A stretch of DNA of 64,000 nucleotides, from the NCBI GenBank assembly GCA_028826165.1, contig JAPDFW010000092.1:806001-870000 (forward strand), written 5' to 3'. The stretch's first letter is position 1. Every line of letters starts with the position of its first letter. The notes below the pieces were generated by a model that was given only the letters and a program-made list of their open reading frames with translations, made no database searches and was not told where the DNA came from. This DNA is from Anaeramoeba ignava BMAN (lineage: Eukaryota > Protista > Anaeramoebae). Position numbers and translations under genes: made by a program. Below are positions 35,388-59,372 of this stretch, one piece after another.

Positions 35388-35520
35388 AAATTAAAATAAT
35401 AAAATTAAAAATTTAAAATTTGGAAAATAAAAAAAAAGCAAAAAAAAAAAATTATTAAAATAAATTTTTTTCATTTTTTTTTTCATTTTCTTTTTTATTT
35501 TCTTTTTTCTTTTTAAAAAT

Positions 35521-37145
35521 ATGTCTCAATCCAAAACATTAAAAATATTAATTATTGGAAATTCTCTTGTTGGAAAAAGTTCACTTTTACTTAGATTTTG
35601 TGATAATCAATTTAATGAAGATTTAGGAACAACAATCGGTGTTGATTTTAGATTTGCAACTGTTAAAATAAATGATGAAGTTGTTAAATTACAAATTGTA
35701 TTAAATTTAAATTTAAAAACGTTTTTTTTTTATATAAGTTATTTTTAATTTTGAAATTAATTTATATAAAAAAAAAACAATAATTAATTAATAAATTTAT
35801 TTTAATTTATTAATTAAATTATTTAATAAAATTATTTTATTTTTATTTAGTGGGATACTGCTGGTAAATTATACTTTAAAAAAAAGCAAAAAAAAAAAGA
35901 AAAAGAAAAAGAAAAAGAAAAAGAAAATACTTCATTTTTTTTCTTTTAAAGCAAAATATACAATTTATTTTATTAATTTAAATTTATTTCAATTTATTTT
36001 ATTAATTTAAATTTATTTCAATTTATTTTATTAATTAAATTTATTTCAATTTATTTTATTAATTAAATTTATTTCAATTTATTTTATTAATTAAATTTAT
36101 TTCAATTTATTTTATTAATTAAATTTATTTCAATTTATATTATTAATTAAATTTATTTCAATTTATTTTATTAATTTAAATTTATTTCAATTTATTTTAT
36201 TAATTAAATTAATTTCAATTTATTTTATTAATTAAATTTATTTCAATTTATTATATTAATTAAATTTATTTCAATTTATTTTATTAATTAAAATTAATTC
36301 CAATTTATTTTATTATTTTAAATTTATTTCAATTTATTTTATTATTTTAAATTTATTTCAATTTATTTTATTATTTAAATTCATTTCAATTTATTTTATT
36401 ATTTAAATTCATTTCAATTTATTTTATTAATTAAATTCATTTCAATTTATTTTATTAATTAAATTTATCAGGACAAGAAAGATTTAGAACAATTACAGGT
36501 ACTTATTATAGAAATGCAGATGGAATTATGGTTGTTTATGATATTACTAATAAAGATACTTTTGATCAAATAAAACTTTGGTTTCAAGAAATTAAAAAAA
36601 ATGCACCAGAAAATGTTGTGAATATTTTAGTTGGAAATAAAACAGATTTAGCACAACAAAGAGTTGTTAGTTATGAAGATGGACAAGTAAATTTATATCA
36701 AAAAATTTATTAAAAAAAATTTTATTTGGAAATTCAAATTTTTTTAATTAGAAACTTGCAAAACAATTTAAATGTGATTTTCTTGAAGTTTCAGCAAAAA
36801 GTAATTCAAATGTTCAAGAATCTTTTCATTTACTTGCTGAACAAACTCTTCAAAAGTAGAAACAAAATTTTAATTCAAAACAAAATTTTTAATCCAAAAC
36901 AAAATTTTAATTCAAAACAAAATTTTTAATTCAAAACAAAAATTTTAATTCAAAACAAAATTTTAATTCAAAACAAAATTTTTAATCCAAAACAATTTTT
37001 AATTCAAAACAAAATTTTAATTCAAAACAAAAATTTTAATCCAAAACAAAATTTTTTTAAAAATAGTTTTAATAAGAAAAAAACAAAGAATAGAAAAGGT
37101 CTTAAATTTAATAAAGATACTCCTGATAAGAAATCATGTTGCTAA
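35521..37145 (+). CDS. Rab-family small GTPase (Rab1/8/18-like), 5 exons
   Basis: GNSLVGKSS, TIGVDF, WDTAGQERFRTIT, GNKTDL, EVSAK and C-terminal KKSCC. Exons 35521-35697, 35851-35863, 36472-36687, 36752-36855 and 37066-37145. Confidence 0.95.
35960..36468. repeat. ~28-bp intronic tandem repeat (aattaaatttatttcaatttattttatt)
   Basis: Direct inspection. Confidence 0.85.
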
Positions 37146-37199
37146 AAAATAATATTGGAAAATATTTAAATTTACTTGATTCTAAAATTTTTATCCAAA

Positions 37200-37700
37200 A
37201 AATCAAAATCAAAATCAATTTAAATTAAAATCAAAAAATCAAAATCAAAATCAAAATCAAAATCAAAATCAATTTAAATTAAAATCAAAATCAAAATTAA
37301 AATCAAAATTAAATTCAAAATAAAATATCAAATTAAAATCAAAAAATCAAAATCAAAATCAATATTAAAATTAAAATTAAAATCAAAATTAAAATCAAAA
37401 TTAAAATCAAAATTAAAATCAAAATTAAAATCAAAATTAAAATCAAAATCAAAATCAAAATCAATTTAAATTAAAATCAAAATCAAAATTAAAATCAAAA
37501 TCAAAATCAAAATCAAAATCAAAATCAAAATCAAAATTAAAATCAAAATTAAAATTAAATTCAAAATTAAAATTAATTTCAAAATTAAAATTAAAATTCA
37601 AAATTAAAATCAAAATCAAAATTAAAATTAAAATCAAAATCAAAATCAAAATCAAAATCAAAATTAAAATTAAAATCAAAATTAAAATCAAAATTAAAAT
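37200..37700. repeat. (aaaatc/aaaatt)n hexamer tract downstream of the Rab gene
   Basis: Direct inspection. Confidence 0.85.
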
Positions 37701-37997
37701 TGAAAAGAAAGTTTTCTATTATTTTCTCTTTATTTTCTTTTTAAAAATTATTTTCTTTTTTTTCTCTTTTTTTTTATATTTTTTTCTTTAAAAAATTTGA
37801 ATTTTTAAGAAAAGAAAATAATAATTTATAATTGTTATTTTGTTTAATTCAAACAAAAAAGAATCAAAATAATATTTTCCAAAATAAAAATAATTCAAAA
37901 ATTTTTTAATTTTTTAATTTTTTAATTTTCATTTTTTTTTTCATTTTTCTTTTTTCAAATTTAAAAAATAAATAAAAAATAAAATAATAAAAATATA

Positions 37998-39249
37998 ATG
38001 ATTTACAATCTTTTTATTTTTTCAAAAGATAATAAATGTCTTTATTATTATGAATGGAATAGACCTTTAAAAGCAGATTCATTAGATTATGAAAAAGAAA
38101 ATTTAAGTGGTTTATTAATTGCAATTTGTGATTTTGTTTCTAAAATTTCTCCAATAAAGTAAATTCAAAAAAATAGATTAAAATCAAAAATAGATCCAAA
38201 TTAAAAAAAATAATAAATTTTCAAATTAAAATATAAATTTAAATTAAAAATAATTCAAAAAAATTTTTAAAAATTCAAATTAAAAATAAATTTTTAAATT
38301 AAATTTTAAATATAAATTTTTAAATTTTTCTTTTTCAAATTTAAAAATAAATAAAAATAAAATAATAAAAAAATCAAATAAAATAAATTCAAATTTATAA
38401 ATCTTTTTATTTTTTAAAAAAATAAATAAATAAATTTAAATTTATTATTATGAATTAAATAGACCTTTAAAAGCAGATTAAATTAAATTATGAAAATAAA
38501 AAATTTAATGGTTTATTAAATTTAAATATTTAAATTGATTTAAAAATTTAAATTAAAATAAATATAAATTTAAATTAAATTTAAATTAAATATAAATAAA
38601 CTAAATTAAAAAAATAAATTCAAATTAAATAAATTCAAATTAAATATAAATTTAAATATAAATTTAAATTAAATATAAATTTAAATTAAATATAAAATAA
38701 ATTTATAAATTTAAATAAATTAAATTAAATATAAATTTAAATTAAATATAAATATAAATTAAAAATAAATTTAAATTAAATATAAATTTAAATTAAATAA
38801 TTAATAAAAATAAAATATAAATTAAATTTAAATTAAAAATAAATTCAAATTAAAAATAAATTTAAATTAAATATAAATTTAAATTAAATATAAATTTAAA
38901 TTAAATATAAATTTAAATTAAATATAAATTCAAATTAAATATAAATTTAAATTAAATATAAATTCAAATTAAATAATTAATAAAAATAAATAGACCTTCT
39001 TTTTTTAAAAGTTATTCAACAAGTTCTTATAAACTTCATTATTATGAAAGTCTTTCAGGTTTTAGAATGGCAATTTTAACAGATCCAACAACTGGTGATT
39101 TAACTGATTCTCTTGAATATATTTATGGAGAATTATTTACTAATTATGTTATGAAAAATCCTCTTTATGAAATTGGTCAAGAAATTAAAAGTCAAAAATT
39201 TATTTATGAACTTGATCTTTATATTTCAAAACTTCCTTTTTTTAAATAA
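37998..39249 (+). CDS. TRAPPC1: TRAPP complex subunit Bet5/TRAPPC1, 2 exons
   Basis: Exon 1 37998-38158 (MIYNLFIFSKDNKCLYYYEWNR...SKISP). Exon 2 38994-39249 (FKSYSTSSYKLHYYESLSGFRMAILTDP...YVMKNPL). Confidence 0.92.
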
Positions 39250-39439
39250 ATTCAAATTCAAATTCATTATAATTTTTTTTTTAATTAATTTTCTATTTTA
39301 AATAAAAGAAAAGAAAAGAAAGAAAAATAAAAATAAAAGGTATTTATTGTTTTTAAAATTTATTTATGAATGAAATTTATTTTTTTGTAAGAATTTAAAA
39401 GGAAAAAAATAATTTTTTCCAATTTAAATTTGTTCTATT

Positions 39440-40855
39440 TTTTTGAAATAAATTGTATTTTTGAAATAAATTGTATTTTTGAAATAAATTGTATTTTTGA
39501 AATAAATTGTTTTTTTGAATTAAATTGTATTTTTTGAATTAAATTGTGTTTTTGAATTAAATTGTGTTTTTGAATTAAATTGTATTTTGAATTAAATTGT
39601 TTTTTTGAATTAAATTGTATTTTTGAATTAAATTGTTTTTGAATTAAATTGTTGTTGAATTAAATTGTTTTTGAATTAAATCCTGTTTGTTGAATTAAAT
39701 TGTTTTTTTGAATTAAATTGTTTTTTGAAATTAAATTGTATTTTTGAATTAAATTGTATTTTTGAATTAAATTGTATTTTTGAATTAAATTGTATTTTTG
39801 AATTAAATTGTATTTTTGAATTAAATTGTTTTTGAAATAAATTATGTTTTTGAAATAAATTATTTTTTGAATTAAATTGTATTTTTGAATTAAATTGTAT
39901 TTTTGAATTAAATTATATTTTTGAATTAAATTGTATTTTTGAATTAAATTGTATTTTTGAATTAAATTGTTGTTGAATTAATCTTTTTTTGAATTAAATT
40001 GTATTTTTGAATTAAATTATATTTTTGAATTAAATTGTATTTTTGAAATAAATTGTTGTTGAATTAAATTATATTTTTGAATTAAATTATATTTTTGAAT
40101 TAAATTGTATTTTTGAAATAAATTATGTTTTTGAAATAAATTGTGTTTTTTGAGTTAATCTTTTTTGAAATAAATTGTATTTTTTGAAATAAATTGTATT
40201 TTTGAATTAAATTATATTTTTGAATTGAATTATATTTTTGAATTAAATTGTATTTTTGAAATAAATTGTATTTTTGAAATAAATTATATTTTTGAATTAA
40301 ATTGTGTTTTTTGAATTAAATTGTATTTTTGAATTAAATTATATTTTTGAATTAAATTGTTTTTTTGAATTAAATTGTTTTTTGAAATTAAATTGTTTTT
40401 TGAATTAAATTGTATTTTTGAATTAAATTGTATTTTTGAATTAAATTGTATTTTTGAAATAAATTGTATTTTTTGAAATAAATTGTGTTTTTGAAATAAA
40501 TTATATTTTTGAATTAAATTGTATTTTTGAATTAAATTGTATTTTTGAATTAAATTGTATATTTTGAATTAAATTGTATTTTTGAATTAAATTGTATTTT
40601 TGAATTAAATTCTGTTTTTGAATTAAATTGTATTTTTGAATTAAATTGTTTTGTTGAATTAAATTATATTTTTGAAATAAATTATATTTTTGAAATAAAT
40701 TATATTGTTAAATTAAATTGTATTTTTGAATTAAATTGTATTTTTGAAATAAATTGTATTTTTTGAATTAAATTGTTTTTGAATTAAATTGTTGTTGAAT
40801 TAAATTATATTTTTTTGAATTAAATTGTATTTTTGAATTAAATTGTTTTTTGAAT
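39440..40855. repeat. ~18-bp tandem repeat (gaattaaattgtattttt), ~1.4 kb, abutting the LysRS stop codon
   Basis: Direct inspection. Confidence 0.95.
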
Positions 40856-43348
40856 TAATCTTTTTTCGAATCATCTTTTGGTTTTGAATCATCTTTTGGT
40901 TGTGATTCATCTTTTGGTTTTGATTCTTTTTGTTCACTTGAATTATCAGGACGCATTGCAGGAAAAAGTAAAACCTCTTTAATATTAATATGGTCAGATA
41001 AAAACATAGTTAATCTATCAATACCCAAGCCCCAACCAGCAGTTGGAGGTAATCCATATTCCAAAGAAGTGCAAAATATTTCATCAATAACTTGAGCTTC
41101 TTCATCACCTTTTGCTTTATCTTGAGCTTGTTGTTGAAATCTTTCTCTTTGTATAATTGGATTGTTTAATTCAGTATATGCATTAATTACTTCTTTTCCA
41201 TTAATAAATAATTCAAATCTTTCTGTTATTCCTTTTTTACTTCGATGATATTTTGCAAGTGGTGACATAATTTCTGGATGATCAATAATAAATGTTGGAT
41301 TTATGCATTTAGGTTCAACAAAATGTCCAACAAGCTATTTATAAAAATGTTTTGTTTTGATTTTTAAATATTTTGTTTTAAATTTTTAAATTTTTTGATT
41401 TACTTTATCAAGTAATCTTGCTGTTGTTCTTGGTGGTGGACATTCAACTCCAAATTCAATACATTTTTGAGAAAGAAAATCATTAGTTTCTTGTGTAGTT
41501 AAATCTTCTGGAATCTAAAAAAAATGAATAAATAAATTAAAATAAATATTAAAAATTTAAATATTAAAATTAAAAATTTAAAATAAATTACTTTAATATT
41601 AGCTTCTTTTTCAATTCCTTCAATCATTGGTATCTTATTAAAAGGAGGTGTAAAATCAATTTCAATAAATTGTGCTTCTAACTTTTCTCTTTCTTCTTTA
41701 ATTTTCTCTTCTTCTAATCTTTTTTGTTCTTCTTTGATTCTTTGTTCATCAGAAATTTTCTTAGTGCTTTTCTTCAATTTATCAAATCCTTTTTGAGTCT
41801 TAACAACAGAAGTAATATTTCTTCCATTATAATGATAAACAACTTTATGAGATCCAGTAATATTATAAGCAAGTTGAGAAAGTAAATCTTCAGTAAGCTT
41901 CATCAAATCATAATAATCAGCATAAGCCATATAGAATTCACAAGTAGTAAATTCAGGATTATGAGTTAAATCAATACTTTCATTTCTAAATTGTTTTCCA
42001 ATTTCATAAACTCTATTAATCCCACCAACAACAAGTTCTTTCAAATAAAGCTCAGGTGCAACTCTCATGAATAAATCAATTCCAAGATCATTATGATGAG
42101 TAATAAAAGGCTTAGCACTTGCTCCTCCACAAATCATATTCATCATTGGTGTTTCAACTTCTAAAAATCCTTTTTCATCCAAAAATTTTCTTATAAACTT
42201 AATGATTCTAGATCTTGTTATAAAAGATTCTTTGATATGAGGATTAACTATCAAATCAAGATATCTATGACGATATCGTATTTCTGGGTCTTGAACACCA
42301 AAATGTAATGATGGAAGTGCTCTTAAACAAGGAGATAAAATTTCAATTTGTTTTGGAAAAATACTCAATTCTCCTGTTTTACTTTTCCCAATAAATCCTT
42401 TAATTCCCACAATGTCTCCTCTTTTAGTTTTGTTGTGAATTGTTGCGAAATCTTGTTCTGAAAATCTTGTATCTGCCATAACCTGTATTTTCATTCCGTT
42501 ATCATAAAGATCATAAAAAACTAATTTTTGGCTTTGAACTCTTTTGGAAAATAATCTTCCTGCAATAGAATAAATTTCTTCAGGTTTTCTTTCTCCGTTT
42601 TTAAGTGAACTGTATTTCTTAATTATGTTTTCTACTGATTCTGTTACTTCATATTTATGTGGATATGGTGTTTCTAATTTGGAAATGGTTTTTACTCGAT
42701 TTTCATAATATGCTTTTGGATCTTGTGGTTCTTGTTCTTTTTTTAATTGATTAGTTTGTTGTGTTTGATTTTGTTGTTGTTGAAGTTTTTTTTCTTTTTC
42801 TTCTTGTTTTCTTTGTTGTCTGAGTCTTCTTTTTTGTTCACTTTTATTAAATTTTAATTTTAATTTTAAATTTTAATTATAATTTAATTTTAATTTTAAT
42901 TTTAATTTTAAATTTTAATTTTGATTTTAATTTTAATTTTAATTTTAATTTTAATTTTATAAATGAATTTTAATTTAATTTTATAAATGAATTTTAATAT
43001 TAATTTTAATTTTAATTTTAATTTTAATTTTAATTTTATAAATGAATTTTAATTTTAATTTTAATTTTAATTTTATAAATGAATTTTAATTTTAATTTTA
43101 ATTTTAATTTTAATTTTAATTTTAATTTTAATTTTAATTTTAATTTTAATTTTAATTTTAATTTTAATTTTATTTTTAAATTTAATATAAATTTGATTTT
43201 AATTTTAATTTTAAACAAGAAACCTTTTGCTAATTTTTTCTGTTTCTTGTGTTTCTTGTTGATTTGTTGTTGTTGTTGTTGTTTTTGTTTCTTCAGTTGT
43301 TTTTGATTTTGTTTCTTCTGTTGTTTGTGTTTTTGGTTCTTGTGACAT
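40855..43348 (-). CDS. KARS: Lysyl-tRNA synthetase, class II, cytosolic type, 4 exons
   Basis: ATG 43348. Motifs [61 protein letters not shown] and [18 protein letters not shown]. Confidence 0.98.
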
Positions 43349-43571
43349 TGAATAAAAGAATTATTATAATAATTATAATTAGAATAAGAATAATAATTGA
43401 AAGAGAAAAATGAAAAAAAAAAATCAAAAAAAAAATTTTTTTAATTAAAAAAAATAATAAAAGAAGAAAAATGACGAAGAAAAACGAATTACTTATTAAT
43501 AAAATAAAAATATTTACTAATTATTATTTAAAATAAATAAAAATAGAGATAAAAAAAAACATTTTTTTTAA

Positions 43572-43612
43572 TTTCATTTTTTTCATTTTTTTCATTTTTT
43601 TCATTTTTTTTT
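43572..43612 (+). promoter_or_regulatory. Four tandem TTTTTCATTTTT initiator-like motifs upstream of the Ras gene
   Basis: The same motif recurs, oriented with the gene, before most start codons in the window. Confidence 0.45.
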
Positions 43613-43787
43613 TGCTTTTTTTTATTATTTTAATTTCTATATTTTTTTTAATTATTAAAAAGAAATTAAAAATTTAGAAACAGAAATTAAAGAAATTAAA
43701 GAAATTAAAGAAATTAAAAAATTTAAGTTTTTATTGAAATAAAATTCATTTTGAATAAATCAAAAAAAAACAAAAAGAATAAAAATA

Positions 43788-44363
43788 ATGGCAGTATTAA
43801 AATTAGTAGTAGTAGGAAGTGGAGCAGTTGGAAAATCTGCACTTTCAGTTCAATTTGTGCATTCAAAATTCATAACGGATTATGAACCAACAATAGAAGA
43901 TTCATTTCGAAGACAAGTTGAGATAGACAAAGAAGTATGTCTTCTTCACATTCTCGACACAGCAGGACAAGAAGAATTTTCTATTATTCGCGATACACAT
44001 TTACGTGTTGGCGACGGTTATTTATTAGTCTTTGCAATTGATAATTTTACTTCCTTCACAGAAATTCCAAAATTTCGAGAAAAAATTTTGCTTTCAAAAG
44101 AAAGTTCTCAAGTTCCTTTTGTAATTGCTGCAAATAAATGTGATTTGGAAAGTAATAGAAAGGTTTCTGTTGCTGAAGCTAAGGATTTGGCAAAAAGTTT
44201 TTCTTGTCCTATTTTTGAAACTTCAGCTAAAACTAGATTTAATGTTGATGAAGTCTTTTTTTGTTTAGCTAGAGAAATTAGGAAAATTAAAAATATTGAC
44301 CAACAAAATGTTGATAATTCAAAACCTCAACCGAAAAAGAAAAAGAAATGTATTCTTCTTTAA
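43788..44363 (+). CDS. Ras/Rap-family small GTPase, intronless
   Basis: GSGAVGKS, YEPTIEDS, DTAGQEE, NKCDL, ETSAK, polybasic KKKKK and CAAX box CILL. Confidence 0.97.
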   Translation: MAVLKLVVVGSGAVGKSALSVQFVHSKFITDYEPTIEDSFRRQVEIDKEVCLLHILDTAGQEEFSIIRDTHLRVGDGYLLVFAIDNFTSFTEIPKFREKILLSKESSQVPFVIAANKCDLESNRKVSVAEAKDLAKSFSCPIFETSAKTRFNVDEVFFCLAREIRKIKNIDQQNVDNSKPQPKKKKKCILL

Positions 44364-44584
44364 TTTCTTTTTATTTGTTCTTTTTTTTTTAATCATTGAA
44401 AGAAAAAATTTTTTTTTGTTCTTTTTTTTTGAAAAATTATTTTTGTCAAAATTCTAAGAATATTGACAATTTTCTTAATTTTTGATAATTTTGGATAATT
44501 TGGATAATTTACATTTTTCATTTCAATTTCTTTTTTATTTTTTTTTTCTTTTCCAAATTTTCACTTTTTCAAAAATAAAAAAAA

Positions 44585-46195
44585 ATCAATCAAAATAAAA
44601 TCAATTTTTAATTTAAAATATAAAATAGAATTAATTTAAAAATATAAAAATAAAATAAAATATAAATTAAATATAAATCAAAATTAATTAATTTTATTTA
44701 TATTTAATAAATAAAATATTTTTAATTAATAAATAATCAAAATAAAATCATTTTTAATTTAAAATATAAAATGGAATTAATTTAAAAATATAAAAATAAA
44801 ATAAAATATAAATTAAATATAAATCAAAACTAATTAATTTTATTAATATTTAATAAATAAAATATTTTTAATTAATAAATAATCAAAATAAAATCAATTT
44901 TAATTTAAAATATAAAATAGAATTAATTTAAAAATATAAAAATAAAATAAAATATAAATTAAATATAAATTAAAACTATTTAATTTTATTTAATATTTAA
45001 TAAATAAAATATTTTTAATTAATAAATAATCATAATAAAATCATTTTTAATTTAAAATATAAAATGGAATTAATTTAAAAATATAAAAATAAAATAAAAT
45101 ATAAATTAAATATAAATCAAAATTAATTTAATTTTATTTATATTTAATAAATAAAATATTTTTAATTAATAAATAATCATAATAAAATCATTTTTAATTT
45201 AAAATATAAAATAGGAATTAATTTAAAAATATAAAAATAAAATAAAATATAAATTAAATATAAATCAAAATTATTTAATTTTATTAATATTTAATAAATA
45301 AAATATTTTTAATTAATAAATAATCAAAATAAAATCATTTTTAATTTAAAATATAAAATAGAATTAATTTAAAAATATAAAAATAAAATAAAATATAAAT
45401 TAAATATAAATTAAAACTATTTAATTTTATTAATATTTAATAAATAAAATATTTTTAATTAATAAATAATCAAAATAAAATCATTTTTAATTTAAAATAT
45501 AAAATAGAATTAATTTAAAAATATAAAAATAAAATAAAATATAAATTAAATATAAATTAAAACTATTTAATTTTATTAATATTTAATAAATAAAATATTT
45601 TTAATTAATAAATAATCAAAATAAAATCATTTTTAATTTAAAAATAAAAATAGAATTAATTTAAAAATATAAAAATAAAATAAAATATAAATTAAATATA
45701 AATCAAAACTAATTAATTTTATTAATATTTAATAAATAAAATATTTTTAATTAATAAATAATCAAAAATAAAATCATTTTTAATTTAAAATATAAAATAG
45801 AATTGATTTAAAAATATAAAAATAAAATAAAATATAAATTAAATATAAATCAAAACTATTTAATTTTATTTATATTTAATAAATAAAATATTTTTAATTA
45901 ATAAATAATCAAAATAAAATCAATTTTAATTTAAAATATAAAATGGAATTAATTTAAAAATATAAAAATAAAATAAAATATAAATTAAATATAAATTAAA
46001 ACTATTTAATTTTATTTATATTTAATAAATAAAATATTTTTAATTAATAAATAATCATAATAAAATCATTTTTAATTTAAAATATAAAATGGAATTAATT
46101 TAAAAATATAAAAATAAAATAAAATATAAATTAAATATAAATCAAAACTATTTAATTTTATTTATATTTAATAAATAAAATATTTTTAATTAAAA
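44585..46195 (+). repeat. 11 x ~146-bp AT-rich satellite array (left arm)
   Basis: The landmark gaatt(a/g)attt recurs at 44628, 44774, 44920, 45067, 45215, 45361, 45507, 45653, 45800, 45946 and 46092. Confidence 0.93.
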
Positions 46196-46273
46196 AAAAT
46201 AAAAATTTTAATTTAAAATAATAAAATTTTTGAAAATTAAAAAATAAGAAAAAAAAAAAAATAATTAAATATT

Positions 46274-46384
46274 CTCGGAATAGCTCAGTTGGTAGAGCAT
46301 TTGACTGTAGATTGTAATTTTAAATAATTTATTTAAAAATAAAGAGATATCAAGGGGTCGCAGGTTCGAATCCTGCTTCCGAGA
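46274..46384 (+). tRNA. trnY-GTA: tRNA-Tyr(GTA) with a 38-nt intron (46311-46348)
   Basis: Acceptor stem CTCGGAA/TTCCGAG + A73 (C1:G72), D arm GCTC..GAGC, anticodon GTA at 46307-46309, intron at the canonical 37/38 position, T arm GCAGG-TTCGAAT-CCTGC. Confidence 0.97.
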
Positions 46385-46414
46385 TATTTTTTTTTATTTT
46401 TTTTTTTTTTTTTT
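46385..46414 (+). terminator. RNA polymerase III oligo-T terminator
   Basis: T runs begin immediately after the tRNA discriminator base. Confidence 0.7.
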
Positions 46415-46424
46415 ATTTAATTTT

Positions 46425-47745
46425 AATAAAAAAGTGGAATTGATATTTTTTTTATTTATTTTTTATTTTTTTATTGAATTTAATAAAAATAAAAGTGGAA
46501 TTGATTATTTATTTAATTAATTGAATTTAATAAAAATAAAAGTGGAATTGATTATTATTTTTTTTAATTAAATTTAATAAAAATAAAAAAGTGGAATTGA
46601 TTATTTTTTATTTATTTTTTTATTTAATTAAATTTAATAAAAATAAAAGTGGAATTGATTATTTATTTTTTTATTGAATTTAATAAAAATAAAAGTGGAA
46701 TTGATTATTTATTTTTTTATTTAATTTAATAAAAATAAAAGTGGAATTGATTATTTATTTTTTAATTAAATTTAATAAAAATAAAAAAGTGGAATTGATT
46801 ATTTTTTATTTATTTTTTTATTTAATTAATTGAATTTAATAAAAATAAAAGTGGAATTGATTATTTATTTTTTTATTGAATTTAATAAAAATAAAAGTGG
46901 AATTGATTATTTATTTTTTTATTTAATTTAATAAAAATAAAAGTGGAATTGATTATTTATTTTTTAATTAAATTTAATAAAAATAAAAAAGTGGAATTGA
47001 TTATTTTTTATTTATTTTTTTATTTAATTAATTGAATTTAATAAAAATAAAAGTGGAATTGATTATTTATTTTTTTATTGAATTTAATAAAAATAAAAAA
47101 GTGGAATTGATTATTTATTTTTTTATTTAATTAAATTTAATAAAAATAAAAAAGTGGAATTGATTATTTTTTATTTTGTTTTTATTTTTTTATTTAAATT
47201 TAATAAAAATAAAAAAGTGGAATTGATTATTTATTTTTTTATTTAATTAAATTTAATAAAAATAAAAGTGGAATTGATTATTTTTTTTTTTAATTAAATA
47301 AAAATAAAAAGTGGAATTGATTATTTTTATTTATTTTTATTTTTAATTAAATTTAATAAAAATAAAAAGTGGAATTGATTTTATTGATTATTTTTTATTT
47401 ATTTTTCTTTTTTTAATTTAAATTTAATAAAAAAGTGGAATTGATTATATTTTTTTTGATTATTTATTTTTTTAATTAAATTTAATAAAAATAAAAAAGT
47501 GGAATTGATTTTTTTTATTTTTTTAATTGAATTTAATAAAAATAAAAAAGTGGAATTGATTTTATTGATTATTTTTTTTTAATTAAATTTAATAAAAATA
47601 AAAAAGTGGAATTGATTATTTTTTATTATTTTTAATTTAAATTTAATAAAAATAAAAAAGTGGAATTGATTATTATTTTTTTAATTAAATTTAATAAAAA
47701 TAAAAAAGTGGAATTGATTATTTTTATTTATTTTTTTTAATTAAT
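46425..47745. repeat. ~25-copy minisatellite (43-66 bp units) with invariant core aaaagtggaattgat
   Basis: Direct inspection; lies between the tRNA terminator and the ATPase stop codon. Confidence 0.9.
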
Positions 47746-50700
47746 TTAATAAATCTGAATCTGTTGAAGATCTGAATTTAATTGTTCATATTTCTTCTTG
47801 TTTTTAAAAGATTTTCTGGAACAACATCTTTTAACCTTTTTAAAAGTAGGAGAAGTAACAAATTGTTCCATAAAATAAGCCAAAACAAGATGAAAAAGAC
47901 AAAGAGCAAGCAAAATAAATTTAAAATTCCAATCCAACTTTTCCATTTGCATAAAACCTCGAATAAAAGAATCAGGAAACAAAAGTAAATAAAAGGATAA
48001 AAGAACCAACAAAATAATAGTAACCAACAAAAAACGGTTAGTGAAAACAGATTTCTTAAAGGGTTTTGAGCGATTGACAGCAATAAGAACGAATAAATAT
48101 TGGAAATTTGAAACAAGGAAAATAGTTGTTGTTTCATAACAGAGAATATTATCAGAATCCAAAGAAGCTTCCAAAGGGGAATAAAAAGATTGCTTTTTCA
48201 ATAGTTCAAGACTGACATATTGGAAACCGAAAATCAAAATAAGATGGAGAACTAAGGAAGTGAGAACAGAAGCAGATACTAAACTTGCAGTGGGTCTTCT
48301 TCTCACTAATCGCTTTGCTGCTCCTGTGCGAGACATGAAAATTGAAAGCGGAAGAACCATAAACATGTCCACATACAAATATTGCCAGTCGCCAAGATTA
48401 CTGTTAATCAAATAAAGTTGAACAACGCCAACAAACTGAATCAATGCATACAAAGCTACAAATTTAAATGCTTGAAATGATGAAACTAAAGAGCACCTTC
48501 CTTCCCGAACAACATCAACAAAGCTTTGGATTGTTTGTCTTTTGCTTGTGAATGGCGCTGCTATTGATGCTTCTGTTTCTGCTAGTGAAACCCCAATGTG
48601 TGCTGCTTTTAATGCTTTTACATCGTTGGCTCCATCTCCACACATTCCTACTACATATCCTATTTCTTGATATTCTTGAATCAGTTGTGATTTGTTTTCT
48701 GGTGTCATTCGTGCAAATATATGTGTTTGAATTAGCATCTTTTCAAAGAGTTCGTGATTTTTTTTCATTTCGAAAAAATGTTCTCCGATTATAACCAGTT
48801 CAATATCATTTGCAGAAACTAATAAGTTATTTTCTATGAAGGAGAAAATATTCAATTAATTAAAATATTCAATTAAAATAAATTAAATAATTAAAATAAT
48901 TAAAATAATTAAAATATTTAATTAAAATAATTAAAATAATTAAAACATTTAAAATAATTAAAATATTCAATTAAAATATTCAATTAAAATATTCAAATAA
49001 AATAATTAAAATATTCAAATAAAATAAATTAAATAAATTAAATAAATACCTTTTTTAATAGTTTCTCCTTTAGAAATATCAACCTCTTCGCTATCAGATA
49101 AAGAAATCTCATCATCTTTTAAATTAATAATTTGATTTTTTTCAAGATCAAAAATTTGATTGTGATTATCCACATTAACCCAACGAATCTTTCCATTCCT
49201 TCTTTCAGATAAAAAAACAACAGAAGTAGGATGAATAAGATTGCATTTCTTGGAAACACTGATAGCAGTCAAAGGATTATCACCAGTAGCCATGACACTT
49301 TCAAATCGCGAATCATTAAGTTGGATAATAACATCCTTTGTGTCTGGCTTAAGTTTGTTTTCAAGAACAAGAAACCCAAGAAAAATCAAATCCTTTTCAA
49401 CCTCTTCTCGCAGAAGATGATCAAGATCACTCAAATCTACTTCGGGAAGCTCCCGATAGGCAAGTGCAATCACTCGATATCCTTCCTTTGTATAAAGATC
49501 AAGAACCGACGAGTAATTTTTAGGAATCGAATTTTCATCACAAAGAATACGGATTTGTTCTGGTGATCCTTTCACATGAAGCTCAAGAGATTGAATATCT
49601 GTTTGCTGAACAATAACGCTCATCCGTTGGAGATTTGAAGAAAAATCAAATGTTTTGACAATCCCAAATTCTGTTGAGGGGTTATTAGCTGTCAATGCCA
49701 GATTTGCATCGGGGTTTTCAATTACTAAATCATCTGAATTTTGTTCTGATTTTTGTTCTGAATCGACATCTTCTGAATTGGCTTCCTTTTCTTCGGAATC
49801 TTTTGGTGGATAAACAATTGTCGATATTAGAGTATCAAAACCTGTATTTTCATCTGATTGAATTTCTTGAAATTCCCAACCGGTAAATTGGAACATTTGG
49901 ATCTCAAGTGGATCGCCAATAATTTCACCGTCAACTCTAGAAAGAGAATGACAACACGCCATAACATGAAGCATTTTAGAAGGAACATTGGAAAACGTTG
50001 AATCGATATGAGTTTGTTCTGAAGAAAATTTGTTTTGGGAAGTTGGACGCACACACAACACTTCAAGCCCATCTGTTGTTAAGGTGCCTGTTTTATCAAA
50101 GCAGATAAAATTAATCTTTCCAGACACATTAATACGAGGGGGAGAAATGCAATAAATCTGTATTTTTTTCAGTCGCATGATTGCAAAAGAAGCACCAGTT
50201 GTCATAACAATAGGAAGTTCTGGAGGAACAACAATAGTGATTAAATCACCTGCGCGAACCAAAATATCAGAAACAGAAACCCCAAGCTTCAGGAAAAATA
50301 TTGTCGACACAATAAAGCCAATAACCGCTATTATTGCCATTACAATCAGGAATTTAAATGTGTCTCGATAAAATTTGAAATTATGTGGTTTAGGAAACAA
50401 AATTGATCGAACTAAAGATCCTTTCATTGTATTGAATGATGTTCTCACAACCATTGCAAGTACTCGATTTCCAGAGTAGAATCGAGATTGAATCACTTTG
50501 GTTCCAGAGTATAATGTGTATTTCTTATGAGATAAAATGTCGTAAATTTGTTTGGGATCGTTTGGAAGTGATGTTTTGATCACTGGTGTAGATTCTCCTG
50601 TTAGCATGCTTTCGTTAACTATGCATTGTCCATTAAGAAGTATGAAATCTCCTGGAAGAATAAAGTTGTTTGGAATTTCGATTACATCTCCAGGAACTAA

Positions 50701-53700
50701 TTTTTTAGAGGAGATTTCTTTGACTATTTTTTTAAATTTAAATTTAATTTTTTGATTTTTTGATTTTGATTTTGATTTTGATTTTGGATTTTGATTTTAA
50801 ATTTGATTTTGATTTTAAATTTGATTTTGATTTTGATTTTGATTTTGATTTTAAATTTGATTTTAAATTTAATTTTGAATTTGATTTTGATTTTGATTTT
50901 AATTTTGATTTTAATTTTAATTTTGATTTAAATTTAAATTTAATTTTTTGATTTTTTGATTTTGATTTTAATTTTGGATTTTGATTTTAAATTTGATTTT
51001 GATTTTGATTTTGATTTTGATTTTAAATTTGAAATTGATTTTGATTTTGATTTTGATTTTGAAATTGATTTTGAAATTGATTTTGATTTTGAAATTGATT
51101 TTGATTTTAGATTTGATTTTGATTTTAATTTTAATTTTGATTTTGATTTTGATTTTGATTTTGATTTTGAAATTGATTTTGATTTTGATTTTGATTTTAA
51201 TTTTGATTTTGATTTTGATTTTGATTTTGATTTTGATTTTGATTTTGATTTTAATTTTTTGATTTTGATTTTGATTTTAATTTTAATTTTAATTTTGATT
51301 ACATTCTCCATTTCGAAAAACATTAACAAAGCATTCATGTCTTGCCATTTTTTGTAAATTTTCTAAATTGCGATGAGCATCAAGCATTCCCATAATAGCT
51401 GCAAATGAAGAAATAAGGAAAATACAAACAGCATAATAATAATAATCTTCCAAAGACCAAACAAGAATAGCAAAAACTTGAAAAACAAATAAAGGATTAA
51501 GAATTTCATCAAGTAACAAACCAATATAAGATTTAACTGGAACATTAATTAAATTTTGTCCAAATAAATTTTTCCGATTTTTAATTTCATTTTTATCATT
51601 GATTCCATTTGACATTGTTGAGAGGATTTCTCTAAAATTTTTATTCATTTCAAATCTTTTCAAAATAATTTGAATAATTTGAATAATTTAAATAATATAA
51701 ATAATTTGAATAATTTGAATAATTTAAATAATTTAAATAATTTGAATAATTTGAATAATTTAAATAATTTAAATAATATAAATAATTTGAATAATTTAAA
51801 TAATATAAATAATATAAATAATATAAATAATATAAATAATATGAATAATTTGAATAATTTAAATAATTTAAATAATATAAATAATTTGAATAATTTAAAT
51901 AATTTGAATAATTTGAATAATTTAAATAATATAAATAATATAAATAATATAAATAATATGAATAATTTGAATAATTTAAATAATATGAATAATTTGAATA
52001 ATATAAATAATTTAAATAATTATATAAATAATTTAAATAATTTTGAATAATTTGAATAATTTGAATAATTTAAATAATATAAATAATATAAATAATTTGA
52101 ATAATTTGAATAATATAAAAATAAATATTAAATAATATAAATAATTTGAATAATTTGAATAATATAAATAATTTGAATAATTTAATTTGAATAATTTAAA
52201 TAATATAAATAATATAAATAATTTAAATATTTTGAATAATTTGAATAATTTAAAATAATTTAAATAGTTTAAATAATATGAATAATTTAAATAATTTAAA
52301 TAATTTAAATAATATGAATAATTTGAATAATTTGAATAATTTAAATAATTAAATAATTTAAATAAATTTAAATAATTTGAATAAAATTGAATAATTTGAA
52401 TAATTTGAATAATTAAAAAATATAAATAAATAATTTGAATAATATAAATAATATGAATAATTTGAATAATTTTGAATAATTTGAATAAATAAATAATTTG
52501 AATAATTTAAATAATATAAATAATATAAATAATTTAAATAATTTTAAATAATATAAATAATTTAAATAATTTAAATAATTTAAATAATATAAATAATATA
52601 AATAATATAAATAATTTAAATAATTTAAATAATTTAAATATTTTGAATAATTTGAATAAATATAAATAATTTAAATAATATGAATAATTTAAATGATATA
52701 AATAAATAAATAATATAAATAATATAAATAATTTAAATAATTTTAAATAATATAAATAATTTAAATAATATAAATAATTTAAATAATTTAAATAATTTTG
52801 AATAATTTGAAATGAATAATTTAAATAATTTTAAATAATTTAAAAATATAAATAATATAAATAATTTGAATAATTATGAATAATTTGAATAATTTAAATA
52901 ATTTGAATAATTTGAATAATTTGAATAATTTAAATAATTTAAATAATTTAAATAATATAAATAATTTAAATAATTTAAATAATTTAAATAATTTAAAATA
53001 ATATAAATAATATAAATAATTTAAAATAATTAAAAATAATATAAATAATTTGAATAATATAAATAAATGAATAATTTAAAAATATAAATAATATAATATA
53101 AATAATATGAATAATTTGAATAAATTGAATAAATTGAATAATTTGAATAATATAAATAATTTAAATAATATAAATAATTTAAATAATATGAATAATTTAA
53201 ATAATATAAATAATATAAATAATATGAATAATATGAATAATATAAATAATTTGAATAATTTAAATAATTTGAATAATATAAATAATTTAAATAATTTAAA
53301 TAATTTGAATAATATAAATAATTTGAATAATTTAAATAATTTGAATAATTTAAATAATTTAAATAAAAATATTGTAATTTGCCTTACTCAACTCTTTGGA
53401 ATGTTTGAGTAGTTGTATCTTGTAAATAATTAATAAATCTGTATTGAAAAGAAACTCTTTGATAATTATTTCCCTTTTGATCTATTAATTGAACATGATC
53501 TTTTTTGACGATATTAAAAGTTTTATCATCTCTCAAAATTAAAAAACGATCAGCATGATTTATATGAAGAACTTTACGATGAGTTGATTTGAGTTTTAAC
53601 TTTGGAAACCAGTGAAAAAAAAGAAGAGATAAACCAACTGTCAAAATAGCAAGAATAACAAAAAAAGTAGTTCTTATATAACTTCTTTTATAAAAAATTA

Positions 53701-53851
53701 AATAGCAAGTTATTTGTGATCCATCATCTGCTATATCAAAGATCTGGTGTGTGTTTTTTTCATCTGTTGAATCCTTTTTTTCAATTTTCTTTAGAATCTT
53801 GTTTTTTTCAATTAGACTTTCGTTTTCCAATGAATTTTTATTTGATATCAT
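47746..53851 (-). CDS. P5B-type P-ATPase (ATP13A2/ATP13A3/Ypk9-like, putative polyamine transporter), multi-exon
   Basis: Motifs LNPLFVFQ, WSLEDYYYYA, ESMLTGESTPV, KGSLVRSILFPKP, YCISPPRINVSG, DKTGTLT, KGSPE, TGDN, GMCGDGAND, EASIAAPFTS and NLGDWQYLYVD. Confidence 0.95.
51662..53365. repeat. 9-bp intronic tandem repeat (aataatttg/aataattta/aataatata), ~1.7 kb
   Basis: Direct inspection; lies in ATPase intron 51656-53387. Confidence 0.92.
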
Positions 53852-54061
53852 GATGGAAGCATAGAGTGTTTTAAGAGAAATATTTTAATTTTGTTTTTGA
53901 TTGTTTTGAATTTGTTTTAAAAAAAAATATTTTTTTTTTGATTGTTTTATTTTGATAAAAAAAATAAAGAAAAAAAAAATGAAAAGTTGAAAAATTGTTG
54001 AATAAAAATTTTTTTTCCTTTTATTAAATTAAATAAAAAATAAAAATAATAAAAAAAAATA

Positions 54062-54172
54062 TCTCGGAAGCAGGATTCGAACCTGCGACCCCTTGATATC
54101 TCTTTATTTTTAAATAAATTATTTAAAATTACAATCTACAGTCAAATGCTCTACCAACTGAGCTATTCCGAG
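54062..54172 (-). tRNA. trnY-GTA: tRNA-Tyr(GTA) with a 38-nt intron, inverted copy of 46274-46384
   Basis: The reverse complement matches the first copy over 111 nt, including the intron. Confidence 0.97.
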
Positions 54173-54249
54173 AATATTTAATTATTTTTTTTTTTTTCTT
54201 ATTTTTTAATTTTCAAAAATTTTATTATTTTAAATTAAATTTTTTTATT

Positions 54250-55835
54250 TTTTTAAATTAAAAATATTTTATTTATTAAATATAAATAAAATTAATTAGT
54301 TTTGATTTATATTTAATTTATATTTTATTTTATTTTTATATTTTTAAATTAATTCTATTTTATATTTTAAATTAAAAATGATTTTATTTTGATTATTTAT
54401 TAATTAAAAATATTTTATTTATTAAATATAAATAAAATTAAATAGTTTTGATTTATATTTAATTTATATTTTATTTTATTTTTATATTTTTAAATTAATT
54501 CTATTTTTATTTTAAATTAAAAATGATTTTATTATGATTATTTATTAATTAAAAATATTTTTATTTATTAAATATAAATAAAATTAAATAGTTTTAATTT
54601 TTATATTTAATTTATATTTTATTTTATTTTTATATTTTTAAATTAATTCTATTTTTATTTTAAATTAAAAATAATTTTTATTATGATTATTTATTAATTA
54701 AAAATATTTTATTTATTAAATATTAATAAAATTAAATAATTTTAATTTATATTTAGTTTATATTTTATTTTATTTTTATATTTTTAAATTAATTCTATTT
54801 TTTATTTTTAAATTAAAAATTGATTTTATTTTTGATTATTTATTAATTAAAAATATTTTATTTATTAAATTTAAACAAAATTAAATATTTTTGATTTATT
54901 TTAATTTATATTTTATTTTATTTTTATATTTTTAAATTAATTCTATTTATTATTTTAAATTAAAATTGATTTTATTTTGATTATTTATTAATTAAAAATA
55001 TTTTATTTATTAAATACTAATAAAATTAAATAGTTTTGATTTATATTTAATTTATATTTTATTTTATTTTTATATTTTTAAATTAATTCTATTTTTATTT
55101 TAAATTAAAAATGATTTTATTTTGATTATTTATTAATTAAAAATATTTTATTTATTAAAATATAAATAAAATTAATTAATTTTGATTTATATTTAATTTA
55201 TATTTTTATTTTATTTTTATATTTTTATTTTTAAATTCATTCTATTTTATATTTTAAATTAAAAATGATTTTATTTTGATTATTTATTAATTAAAAATAT
55301 TTTATTTATTAAATATTAATAAAATTAAATAATTTTGATTTATATTTAGTTTATATTTTTATTTTATTTTTATATTTTTAAATTAATTCCATTTTTATAT
55401 TTTAAATTAAAAATGATTTTATTTGATTATTTAGGAGACAAAAATATTTTTATTTATTAAATATGTCAAAAATTAAATAGTTTTAATTTATATTTAATTT
55501 ATATTTTATTTTATTTTTATATTTTTAAATTAATTCTATTTTATATTTAAAATTAAAATTGATTTTATTTTTGATTATTTATTAATTAAAAATATTTTAT
55601 TTATTAAATATTAATAAAATTAAATAGTTTTGATTTATATTTAATTTATATTTTATTTTATTTTTATATTTTTAAATTAATTCCATTTTTTATTTTAAAT
55701 TAAAAATGATTTTATTATGATTATTTATTAATTAAAAATATTTTATTTATTAAATATAAATAAAATTAATTAATTTTGATTTATATTTAATTTATATTTT
55801 ATTTTATTTTTATATTTTTAAATTAATTCCATTTT
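54250..55835 (-). repeat. 11 x ~146-bp AT-rich satellite array (right arm, inverted relative to 44585-46195)
   Basis: The landmark attc recurs at 54355, 54501, 54649, 54795, 54943, 55089, 55242, 55389, 55536, 55683 and 55829. Confidence 0.93.
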
Positions 55836-55968
55836 CTCCTTTTTTTTTGATTGTTGAAATTTCGCAAAAAAAAGGAGAAAGAAAATCTTTTCATTTTTTC
55901 ATTTTTTTCATTTTTTTTAATTTTTTTTTTAATTTTTTTTTTAATTGATAAGATCCCATTTTTCTCTT

Positions 55969-58900
55969 ATGGAATCAATTCGATCATCATCGTCCCTTGC
56001 TTTATTAACAGGAAAAGTACCCATAAGTCTTTATGACGAGAAATTTTGGGAGCAATTTTTTAACGAATTTCATTTGCCACTTTCAAAACTAAAATTTGTT
56101 TCAACAAACAAAGTTTTTTTACAAGAGTTTTTTCATTTTATTGAAAATAATTTAAAAACAGAAAACTTGCAGAAATTAATTTATAAAGGAATAGAGGGAA
56201 TCAGAACACTTAATGAACAAGAAATAAAAAAATCAGAAAAAGCAAAAAAATTTTTTCAAACAACAAATTTATTATTTTTAATAAAAATGTTTATTCACAT
56301 GTTTTTAGAAGTTCATCTTTCTCATAAAAAAATGGATGATTCACCTCAAAATCCTTTTTATTCATTCAAAACACAAAATCAAACAACTTCAACTGAAAAT
56401 GGTTTAAGTTTTATTCCAAAACCACCAGAAAAAACCTTTTCAGTTTCTTCATTTGATGATATTTTTAATACTTTTCCTACAGTTCCAGAAAAAATCCTTC
56501 AAAATCAAAATCTTTATCAACCTTCCAATTTAGAAAATCATTTCTATTTTCAATTAAATAGTAAAATCAAAATCAATTTGAAAATCAAAACCAAAATTAA
56601 AATCAAAATCAAAATCAAAATCAAAATCAAATTCAAATAAAAATTAAAATCAAAATCAAATTTAAAATCAAAATCAAAATCAAAATCAAATTCAAATTCA
56701 AAATTAAAATCAAATTCAAAATCAAAATCAAAATTAAAATTAAATTTGAAAATTAAAATTAAAATTAAAATTAATTTGAAAATTAAAATTAAAATCAATT
56801 TGAAAATTAAAATAAAAATAAAAATAAATCAAGAAAAAGAAATTGAACAAAATCAATCAATTCTTCAAGAATTAATCGAAACATTATCACAATTCCTCTT
56901 GAGCCACACAATGAAAAATTTATCAGATTACATAATTCAAATAGAAGCAATTTCGATACTTATAATTCTTCTATCTTCTGAAATTTATTCCTCATTTAAA
57001 AATACATCATCATTAAAAACATCAGATTATTATCCTTTCCAAATCCAAAAAATCTTCTTTTCACAAAATCAAGAAATTGCTAACTCTTTAATTTCTTTAT
57101 TTCTTTTAAACATTATTTCTCAAAAACAAATCACAAAATCAATCACTTTTAAACCAAAAATTTCACGGAAAAGTATCAAAAATTAAATTAAATTAAATTA
57201 AATTAAATTAAATTAAATTAAATCAAATTAAATTAAATCAAATTAAATCAAATTAAATCAAATTAAATTAAATTAAATCAAATTAAATTAAATTAAATTA
57301 AATTAAAATTAAATTCAAAATTAAATTAAATTAAATTAAATTCAAATCAAATTAAATCAAATTAAATCAAATTCAAAATTAAATCAATTAAATTAAATTA
57401 AAATTAAATTAAATCAAATTAAATCAAATTAAATCAAATTAAATCAAATTAAATCAAATTAAATCAAATTAAATCAAATTAAATCAAATTAAATCCAAAT
57501 CAAATCAAATTAAATTAAATCAAATTGAAAATTAAATTAAATCCAAAATCAAATCCAAAATAAAATCAAATTTAAATTAAATTAAATTAAATTAAATCAA
57601 ATCAAATTAAATTAAATTAAAATCAAAATTAAAATCAAAATTAAAATAAAAACCAAAATAAAATTTTAATTGATTTATTATATTCCGAAGATTGTTTTAT
57701 TGATGTGGATTATTCAACTTCAACTTTGGAAGATACACTAAATAATATTTTTGCAGATTCTACTCCAGTTGCAACATTCTCTCTTTCATTTATTTTAGCA
57801 CTTCTACAACCAACCCATTTTGGTTCAGAAAATACCCACAATCCTTATCAAGATGCCTTATCAAATATTACAAATTTTCAAGGATTTGGATTATCCGATT
57901 TTTCATCTTTACAAATTCCTTTTAATTCATTATTAAAAATAATATTTTCGTAAAGAAATAATTTCTATTTGGAATATTTATATATATATTTATATATATT
58001 TATATATATTTCCTTTTATTATTTTAGAAAAGAAAATATGAACGAACAAATGCTTCTTTTGGCTTTTCATCTTCTTTCCAAAAATTCTTCATTTCTTCAA
58101 TTTTCATTTTCAACTTCAATTTTCTTCACTTGTATTGAAAACTTAATAGATGAATTATATCAATTTACTAAAATTGAACCGCAATTAAAAGATGAAAGAA
58201 TTTCAGTTGTTCATTTGATTTTGGTTGTTTTACTTGTTTGGTCACAAGATCAATCATTTGGAATACTTCTTTCTTCAAAGGTTTTTCTTAAAAAAAAACA
58301 AAACAAAAAATTTTCCGAATTTGAATTTGAATTTGAATTTGAATTTTTTGATTTGAATCCCAAATAGTTTTCACAAAATTTATCACACAGATTGAAAACC
58401 AAGCATTTATCAAAACTTTCTCTTGGAAACTTGCTTATTCTTTTCTTATTAGAACTTGCAAAATCAAATCTTGAAAATTCTTTTGATATGGAATTTATCA
58501 ATATTATTTTTTCCACTGTTCATAATCTGGCATGTGTTTCTACTGAAATTTCAGTAGAAGTTTCTTGCACTTTTTGTGATATCATAAATTTTTTAACATC
58601 CAAAATTTTATCACTTATGGATCTCGATCAAAATCAGTTAGAAAATTCTGAAGACAATGAAGACGAAAAAAGATCACTTAAAGAAATCAAGCAATACAAC
58701 AAAATAATTGAGAAATTTGCGAAAGAAAAAACATCACTTTCTCACAAAATCCGAAAAAATTGGAACAAACACAATCAACTATTCAAAAATGATGAGAAAT
58801 ATTCAAGAAACGAACAAACAAATCATCCGACAAAATGGAATGAAATCAAAAGTTATGAATTTTTTGAAGAAAAAAAGACAGAAAGACCCAAAAGAACAAA

Positions 58901-59372
58901 TCCAATTTTTTGCCGAAACGTGTTTGTTGAAGCAAATATCCTTGATTTCTCTCCAAAACTGGCTTTTTATTCTGATATACTGACTCTTTTATGCGACACT
59001 TTGAATTTTATTTTAGTGACTAAATTAAGAAATAATATTCGAATCTTAGTTTGTATTTTAATTCATTGCAGAGTTTTGTTTTTATTTGAACAGCATCCTC
59101 GAATTTGGAAATTTGTTCATAATTTGAAAAAACTTTCCAAAATATTCCAGTTTGAATCACTTGAACATGATTTAATTAAATTCAAAAATCACAATCAAAT
59201 TGTGAATAAATTCACATCAATGATTCCAACAATTCAACTTGAATTAAAAGGTTTGCATAGTTTTCCTTTGAAAATATTTCGTTTTCAAGACAATTCTTCA
59301 AATCAAAATTTCTTAATCTTGGAAACTTGGTCATCTATTGGTAAATATAGTTCTTTTTGTTGGAATCTTTAA
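55969..59372 (+). CDS. DYM: Dymeclin-family protein, 5 exons
   Basis: LALLTGKVPISLYDEKFWEQFF, IENNLKTENLQKLI, FQTTNLLFLI, TPVATFSLSFILALL, NPYQDAL, LILVVLLVWSQDQSF and LSLGNLLILFL resemble dymeclin. In-frame GT-AG introns 56561-56833, 57173-57690, 57950-58027 and 58281-58367. Confidence 0.8.

Follow-up and report, generated by a model that had tools for sequence, protein, structure and literature searches.

A 64-kb stretch of DNA from the anaerobic amoeba Anaeramoeba ignava BMAN (C82:806001-870000 of a 42,843,398-bp, 147-contig assembly; hereafter the window, to which coordinates refer unless a contig is named) raises the question of how two inverted arms of ~1.8 kb, each made of a 146-bp satellite and a tRNA-Tyr gene, came to lie on either side of an intact P5-type ATPase gene, and whether their symmetry serves a function. 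The genome is 80.65% A+T and was assembled from Nanopore reads (PMC11550330); all results come from the assembled contigs of this one strain, and the arms and the orientation of the core between them are known here from the assembly alone. The answer that we favor, with a probability of roughly 0.6, is that the right arm would be a one-off inverted templated insertion, for which the neighboring satellite-tRNA segment was copied into a staggered break, and that the symmetry of the arms would have no function of its own.

Satellite arrays were called with Tandem Repeats Finder (TRF) and tRNA genes with cmscan against RF00005. The left array (44583-46206, + strand), also analyzed by unit alignment, contains 11.1 copies with 96% matches, and the right array (54242-55835, - strand) contains 10.8 copies with 92% matches. 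The left tRNA-Tyr(GTA) gene (46274-46384, +; intron 46311-46348) is separated from its array by a spacer (46207-46273, +) that consists in part of a degenerate satellite unit and differs from the right copy by one substitution and one indel. The right tRNA-Tyr(GTA) gene (54062-54172, -) is identical to the left one at 111 of 111 positions, intron included, and cmscan scored each at 60.5 bits, while ARAGORN, run with its intron search off, reported no tRNA in the window. Judged by sequence, both are eukaryotic tRNA-Tyr genes, with a cloverleaf, the GTA anticodon, C1-G72, A73, A and B boxes, a 38-nt intron after position 37, and a T-run terminator; both are probably active, which would provide a second dose of tRNA-Tyr. 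DNA and pattern searches of the genome found no third tRNA-Tyr gene, although a strongly diverged one could escape them; three intron-bearing tRNA matches, on C79 and C67, fall outside the tRNA-Tyr identity check.

A preliminary description of the locus had recognized the inverted arms, their ~11 units apiece, the identical inward-pointing tRNA genes, and the joining of satellite and tRNA into a unit, all of which stand. It had placed the end of the homology at the T-terminator; the alignment in fact continues about 45 bp beyond the tRNA, to ~46430 on the left and ~54019 on the right. Identity between the arms is about 95%, with a longest perfect block of 192 bp. The same description had taken the arms for separate copies, and rightly so: their units are not collinear (distance 0.043 between position-matched units vs 0.048 overall, p = 0.07), no unit is identical between them, and the tRNA-proximal unit carries the G/A difference reported for it (atggaatt on the left, atagaatt on the right). 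Left and right units are inseparable as groups (p = 0.15), and unit heterogeneity is 0.065 in the right array vs 0.029 in the left.

A pattern search of the genome matched the 146-bp satellite 33 times, in three arrays that all lie on C82 (1 of 147 contigs). The third array (C82:662.7-665.1 kb), 17 units long, lacks a tRNA and is located between an identical copy of the Ras gene that adjoins the left arm and a BTB-TLDc gene, at whose 3' end it stops; the satellite is therefore not always upstream of a tRNA. A genome-wide search had been proposed to see whether the unit always precedes tRNA-Tyr, and its outcome, a unit confined to C82 with one array lacking a tRNA and just two tRNA copies in all, speaks against both that rule and the suggestion of a dispersed satellite-tRNA module, and equally against a mobile element of the SINE kind.

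The two arms join their surroundings in different ways. Unit phase is the same at the two ends of the left array, which leaves a whole number of units between the Ras 3' flank and the tRNA spacer, and the Ras-side junction of this array is common to the third array. On its other side, a minisatellite of 26 units of 43-66 bp (46383-47755, +; TRF) keeps its register from the final 2 nt of the left tRNA up to the ATPase stop, its units diverged from one another. The right array, previously counted as 11 units, starts mid-unit after unique sequence at its outer end, and the right arm carries just part of the first minisatellite unit. Because of these unit phases and the minisatellite register, the left locus is continuous with both of its neighbors and the right arm is truncated at either end, from which we infer that the left locus was the donor and the right arm the copy. 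A truncated copy paired with a donor in register with its neighbors is the configuration expected of a templated insertion at a staggered break. Synteny with A. flamelloides is unlikely to polarize a young event such as this one, because mean amino-acid identity between the two species is only 37%.

The junctions of the right arm are in keeping with an insertion. A 12-bp direct repeat covers both of its ends, with an inner copy at 54011-54022 (+) and an outer copy at 55832-55843 (+) that matches it at 11 of 12 positions. Each copy overlaps the right arm by a 4-5-nt T-run, and the last 4-5 nt of the inner copy form a microhomology with the donor. The repeat, which flanks the right arm alone, is a candidate target-site duplication, a feature that had been reported as absent; random intergenic point pairs match as well in 0.3% of trials. 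At the outer breakpoint lies a perfect inverted repeat with 15-bp arms and an 18-nt loop (55833-55880), one arm of which is the outer copy of the direct repeat. This hairpin is the only perfect, G/C-containing one with an arm of at least 12 in the window, with a chance probability of about 0.1%. Several points weigh against reading the junctions in this way. The direct repeat and the hairpin were noticed post hoc and in T-rich DNA, the folding of the hairpin is not unusually stable relative to shuffles (z -1.6), and the inner repeat has a second possible reading, as donor sequence that lost 4 nt. In addition, the right array is the more heterogeneous of the two, and could be older than supposed or hold uncorrected long-read errors. 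Taken together, the direct repeat, the microhomology, and the hairpin constitute good but not conclusive evidence.

The site of the presumed insertion is the spacer between the ATPase gene, whose leader is 160 bp long, and a dymeclin gene (55969-59369, +), which is arranged head-to-head with the ATPase and starts 126 bp from the outer junction. With the right arm taken out, the two genes stand head-to-head about 300 bp apart (160 + 126 bp). The ancestral state would thus have been the left locus as it stands, with Ras, satellite, tRNA-Tyr, minisatellite, and ATPase 3' end in order. A staggered break about 12 nt wide may have occurred in the ~300-bp ATPase/dymeclin spacer, at the foot of the 15-bp hairpin. 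One of its ends would have paired by a T-run with the left locus close by and primed synthesis over 1.8 kb, taking in the tRNA and the greater part of the satellite, before a further microhomology of 4-5 nt allowed it to be joined to the opposite end. The outcome would be an inverted copy between short direct repeats, with the core itself not inverted, and the arrays would later have turned over by slippage or unequal exchange.

Because the copy retains the intron and 1.6 kb of upstream sequence and lies 8 kb from the donor, the duplication was DNA-level and local. Microhomology-mediated break-induced replication (MMBIR), fork stalling and template switching (FoSTeS), and polymerase-theta-type joining are the repair classes in question. 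The locus resembles a microhomology-mediated templated insertion in its presumed local donor, its inverted copy, the candidate 4-5-nt microhomology at both ends, the likely position of the break at a secondary structure, and the arbitrary points at which both ends are cut. It differs in that the copied segment includes a whole tRNA gene and in the 12-bp flanking direct repeat, a feature seen more typically with staggered nicks or retrotransposition.

The core between the arms is 7.6 kb long and, as previously described, holds the P5-ATPase gene and the minisatellite, to which intronic repeats must be added. The ATPase (47746-53851, -), whose domains were identified by a Pfam search run exon by exon, comprises four exons in phase (53851-53388, 51655-51303, 50723-49050, and 48833-47746) that encode 1192 codons with no internal stops, and it is single copy by a search of its own genome. 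It has PPELP in transmembrane segment 4 (TM4; 50195-50215, -), which we take to be the P5A-type signature, together with the PF12409 N-terminal domain.

On the far side of the left arm, the Ras gene (43788-44363, +) has a second copy, inverted and identical at 576 of 576 positions, 188 kb away. It belongs to a block of Rab, a small TRAPP-like gene, lysyl-tRNA synthetase (LysRS), Ras, and satellite (34850-46206, +) with an inverted duplicate at C82:662.7-674 kb; the duplicate is about 10 kb long, its distal end having been placed by coordinates only, and the third array is its end. The left array is therefore part of two inverted duplications at once, and the second of these supports a background of local duplication. 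The stretch at 21.5-31.2 kb of the window is single copy at the DNA level, and a choline-transporter-like gene next to the Ras block has an older collinear paralogue at C82:682.6 kb with 68% amino-acid identity, so arranged that block and paralogue may form an old inverted repeat, part of which was homogenized in recent times.

The inverted tRNA-Tyr arrangement is one case of a pattern common in this genome. The RF00005 search returned 63 tRNA genes, among which 12 same-score pairs lie on single contigs; four of the 12 are inverted, and all four of these are convergent (p about 0.06, a small number). In the convergent Arg, Glu, and Lys pairs, 0.5-2 kb of flanking sequence is common to both members at 92-96% identity, across spacers of 2.3, 60, and 182 kb, respectively. 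Arrays with a period of 80-330 bp (mostly 135-175 bp) start within 300 bp of 12 of the 17 sampled tRNA types, as against 0 of 84 tiles elsewhere in the window, a control drawn from one window only; enrichment of long-period arrays beside tRNA genes is thus likely, its size uncertain. A parallel had been drawn with Entamoeba, in which tRNA genes form long tandem arrays that make up >10% of the genome (PMC2652664). The tRNA genes here likewise adjoin A+T-rich tandem repeats, as in the Entamoeba tRNA-linked short tandem repeat arrays, but they are single rather than tandemly arrayed, with about 63-111 dispersed genes and long-period flanking satellites, and the parallel does not hold.

Individual loci vary widely in form. 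On C105 (36065-217964), a convergent Glu-CTC pair 60 kb apart is nested inside a Lys-CTT pair 182 kb apart, with flanks shared, and on C115 (469999-472371) the 2.3-kb spacer of an identical convergent tRNA-Arg(TCT) pair consists almost wholly of a 12-unit, 162-bp satellite. A 322-bp satellite lies upstream of a tRNA-Trp gene at C59:171106-171178, and each of its units contains the first 20 nt of that tRNA. At C104:288264-292571 there are at least eight tRNA genes with a near-identical backbone and the anticodons CTG, GTC, CAT (twice), CTC (three times), ATC, and CCA, as though a single gene had been amplified while its anticodon changed. A well-formed 71-nt tRNA with a CUA (amber) anticodon is found at C71:170836-170906 (67 bits), with U1-A72/G73 like that of Asp and Glu tRNAs; the UAG recoding that it might suggest was rejected, as the long open reading frames of the window (up to 1815 codons) contain no in-frame TAG.

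Against this background, other explanations of the paired arms can be weighed. The main rival is an inversion: if the ATPase had formerly been a plus-strand gene preceded by one satellite-tRNA unit, an inversion with one staggered breakpoint would have placed a copy of that unit at either end and yielded the same final layout. Such inverted duplications, of up to ~1.9 kb, accompany 59% of Drosophila inversions (PMC1885836), a single-copy segment between inverted copies of about 1.8 kb resembles the breakpoints of Ranz et al. (PMC1885836), and the Ras block 188 kb away could share such an origin. The inversion would, however, have created a new junction between the left tRNA and the ATPase, yet the diverged 26-unit minisatellite crosses it in register, which suggests that the core here, unlike the segments of Ranz et al. 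(PMC1885836), was not inverted; it also leaves the direct repeat around the right arm alone unexplained, and we regard it as unlikely. A retrocopy of a 5'-truncated Ras read-through transcript, inserted by an enzyme of the long interspersed nuclear element (LINE) type, would account for that 12-bp repeat, for the A-run at the 3' end, and for the truncated 5' end, and Ras is oriented in the direction of the tRNA. With no poly(A) tail and a chance of about 0.05% that a random insertion into the 42.8-Mb genome would fall within 10 kb of its donor, it is extremely improbable. An assembly artefact, in which one arm was entered twice or two haplotypes were fused, might be expected of a repeat-rich genome of very high A+T content that was assembled from Nanopore reads (PMC11550330); the arms nonetheless differ in unit order, unit number, and both junctions, a direct repeat marks the junctions, and the flanking genes are single copy, leaving little probability for this explanation.

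Other readings would give the symmetry a function. The arms could delimit a cassette in which recombination flips the ATPase, or the two TFIIIC-bound tRNA genes could bound an insulated domain. Inverted homology of 192 bp perfect and 1.6 kb at ~95% would permit ectopic exchange, with which the inseparability of left and right units is in keeping, and one report describes S. pombe tRNA genes as known barriers (PMC2040200). At the flip/flop mating-type loci of the yeasts Ogataea, Komagataella, and Ascoidea, repeats of ~2 kb are accompanied by alternative alleles and by a silencing landmark (PMC6692504). The 1.8-kb arms around an internal segment resemble them in outline, but there is no alternative allele inside, no silencing landmark at one end, and no telomere or centromere nearby. 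The ATPase gene lies between the arms with its 160-bp leader and 3' end, and an identical tRNA adjoins it either way, so that a flip would visibly change nothing; the sequence likewise holds no orientation-dependent asymmetry in the form of a silencer, promoter, telomere, or second allele. As such pairs are also common in this genome at 2-180 kb spacing, a functional cassette or insulated domain is very unlikely, marginally less so than the artefact; passive inversion between the arms is possible, and a regulated flip-flop switch is unsupported. The fission-yeast centromere, with cnt/imr domains bearing CENP-A and outer repeats (PMC6538654), invites comparison through its locus-unique inverted repeats, which carry tRNA genes and enclose a core several kb long, and the satellite unit here is nucleosome-sized. 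Unlike that central domain, the core here is an intact, protein-coding, single-copy gene between arms ~95% alike, outer heterochromatic repeats are lacking, and genes (Ras and dymeclin) flank both arms directly, within 220 bp. Nor is there one such structure per contig: the satellite occurs on a single contig, C105 holds two nested convergent pairs and most of the 147 contigs none, and nucleosome-sized satellites adjoin most tRNA types. The proposal of a centromere-like or insulated domain thus finds no support, the centromere-like form having only the slimmest probability, equal to that of the retrocopy.

Each minisatellite unit carries an A-run followed by GTGGAAT, a motif with 5273 copies genome-wide vs 279 for a reversed control. 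Many satellites that are otherwise unalike carry one copy of it in every unit, some 3' flanks hold a solitary copy, and it was seen, besides window 46383-47755, in the sampled stretches L006, L007, L011, L015, L018, L019, L022, L025, and L029; by its distribution it is a candidate protein-binding or 3'-end element. Its presence at both the end of the third array and the minisatellite was rejected as proof of homology in view of its 5273 occurrences. A broader and distinctly speculative idea, to which we give less credence than to the inversion and more than to a functional cassette, is that the tRNA genes of A. ignava are systematic seeds of rearrangement nearby: stalled forks would give rise to flanking nucleosome-length satellites and to convergent inverted copies, the pairs would stay recombination-active, so that the 2-180-kb segments between them would be inversions polymorphic within the population, and the A-run and GTGGAAT motif may mark the starts of duplications.

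The templated insertion that we favor makes the locus look like ordinary genome churn, neither a centromere nor a switch. Taken alone it carries little weight, since a repair event of a familiar type would account for the duplicated tRNA gene; it is useful as a clean and readable case, in which donor, copy, both junctions, and hairpin lie within 12 kb of a very A+T-rich genome. If the genome indeed has no other tRNA-Tyr gene, the copy would also have doubled the dosage of an essential tRNA, and the convergent tRNA pairs of A. ignava, taken as a set, could show whether new satellites and inverted duplications in this lineage are driven by tRNA genes.

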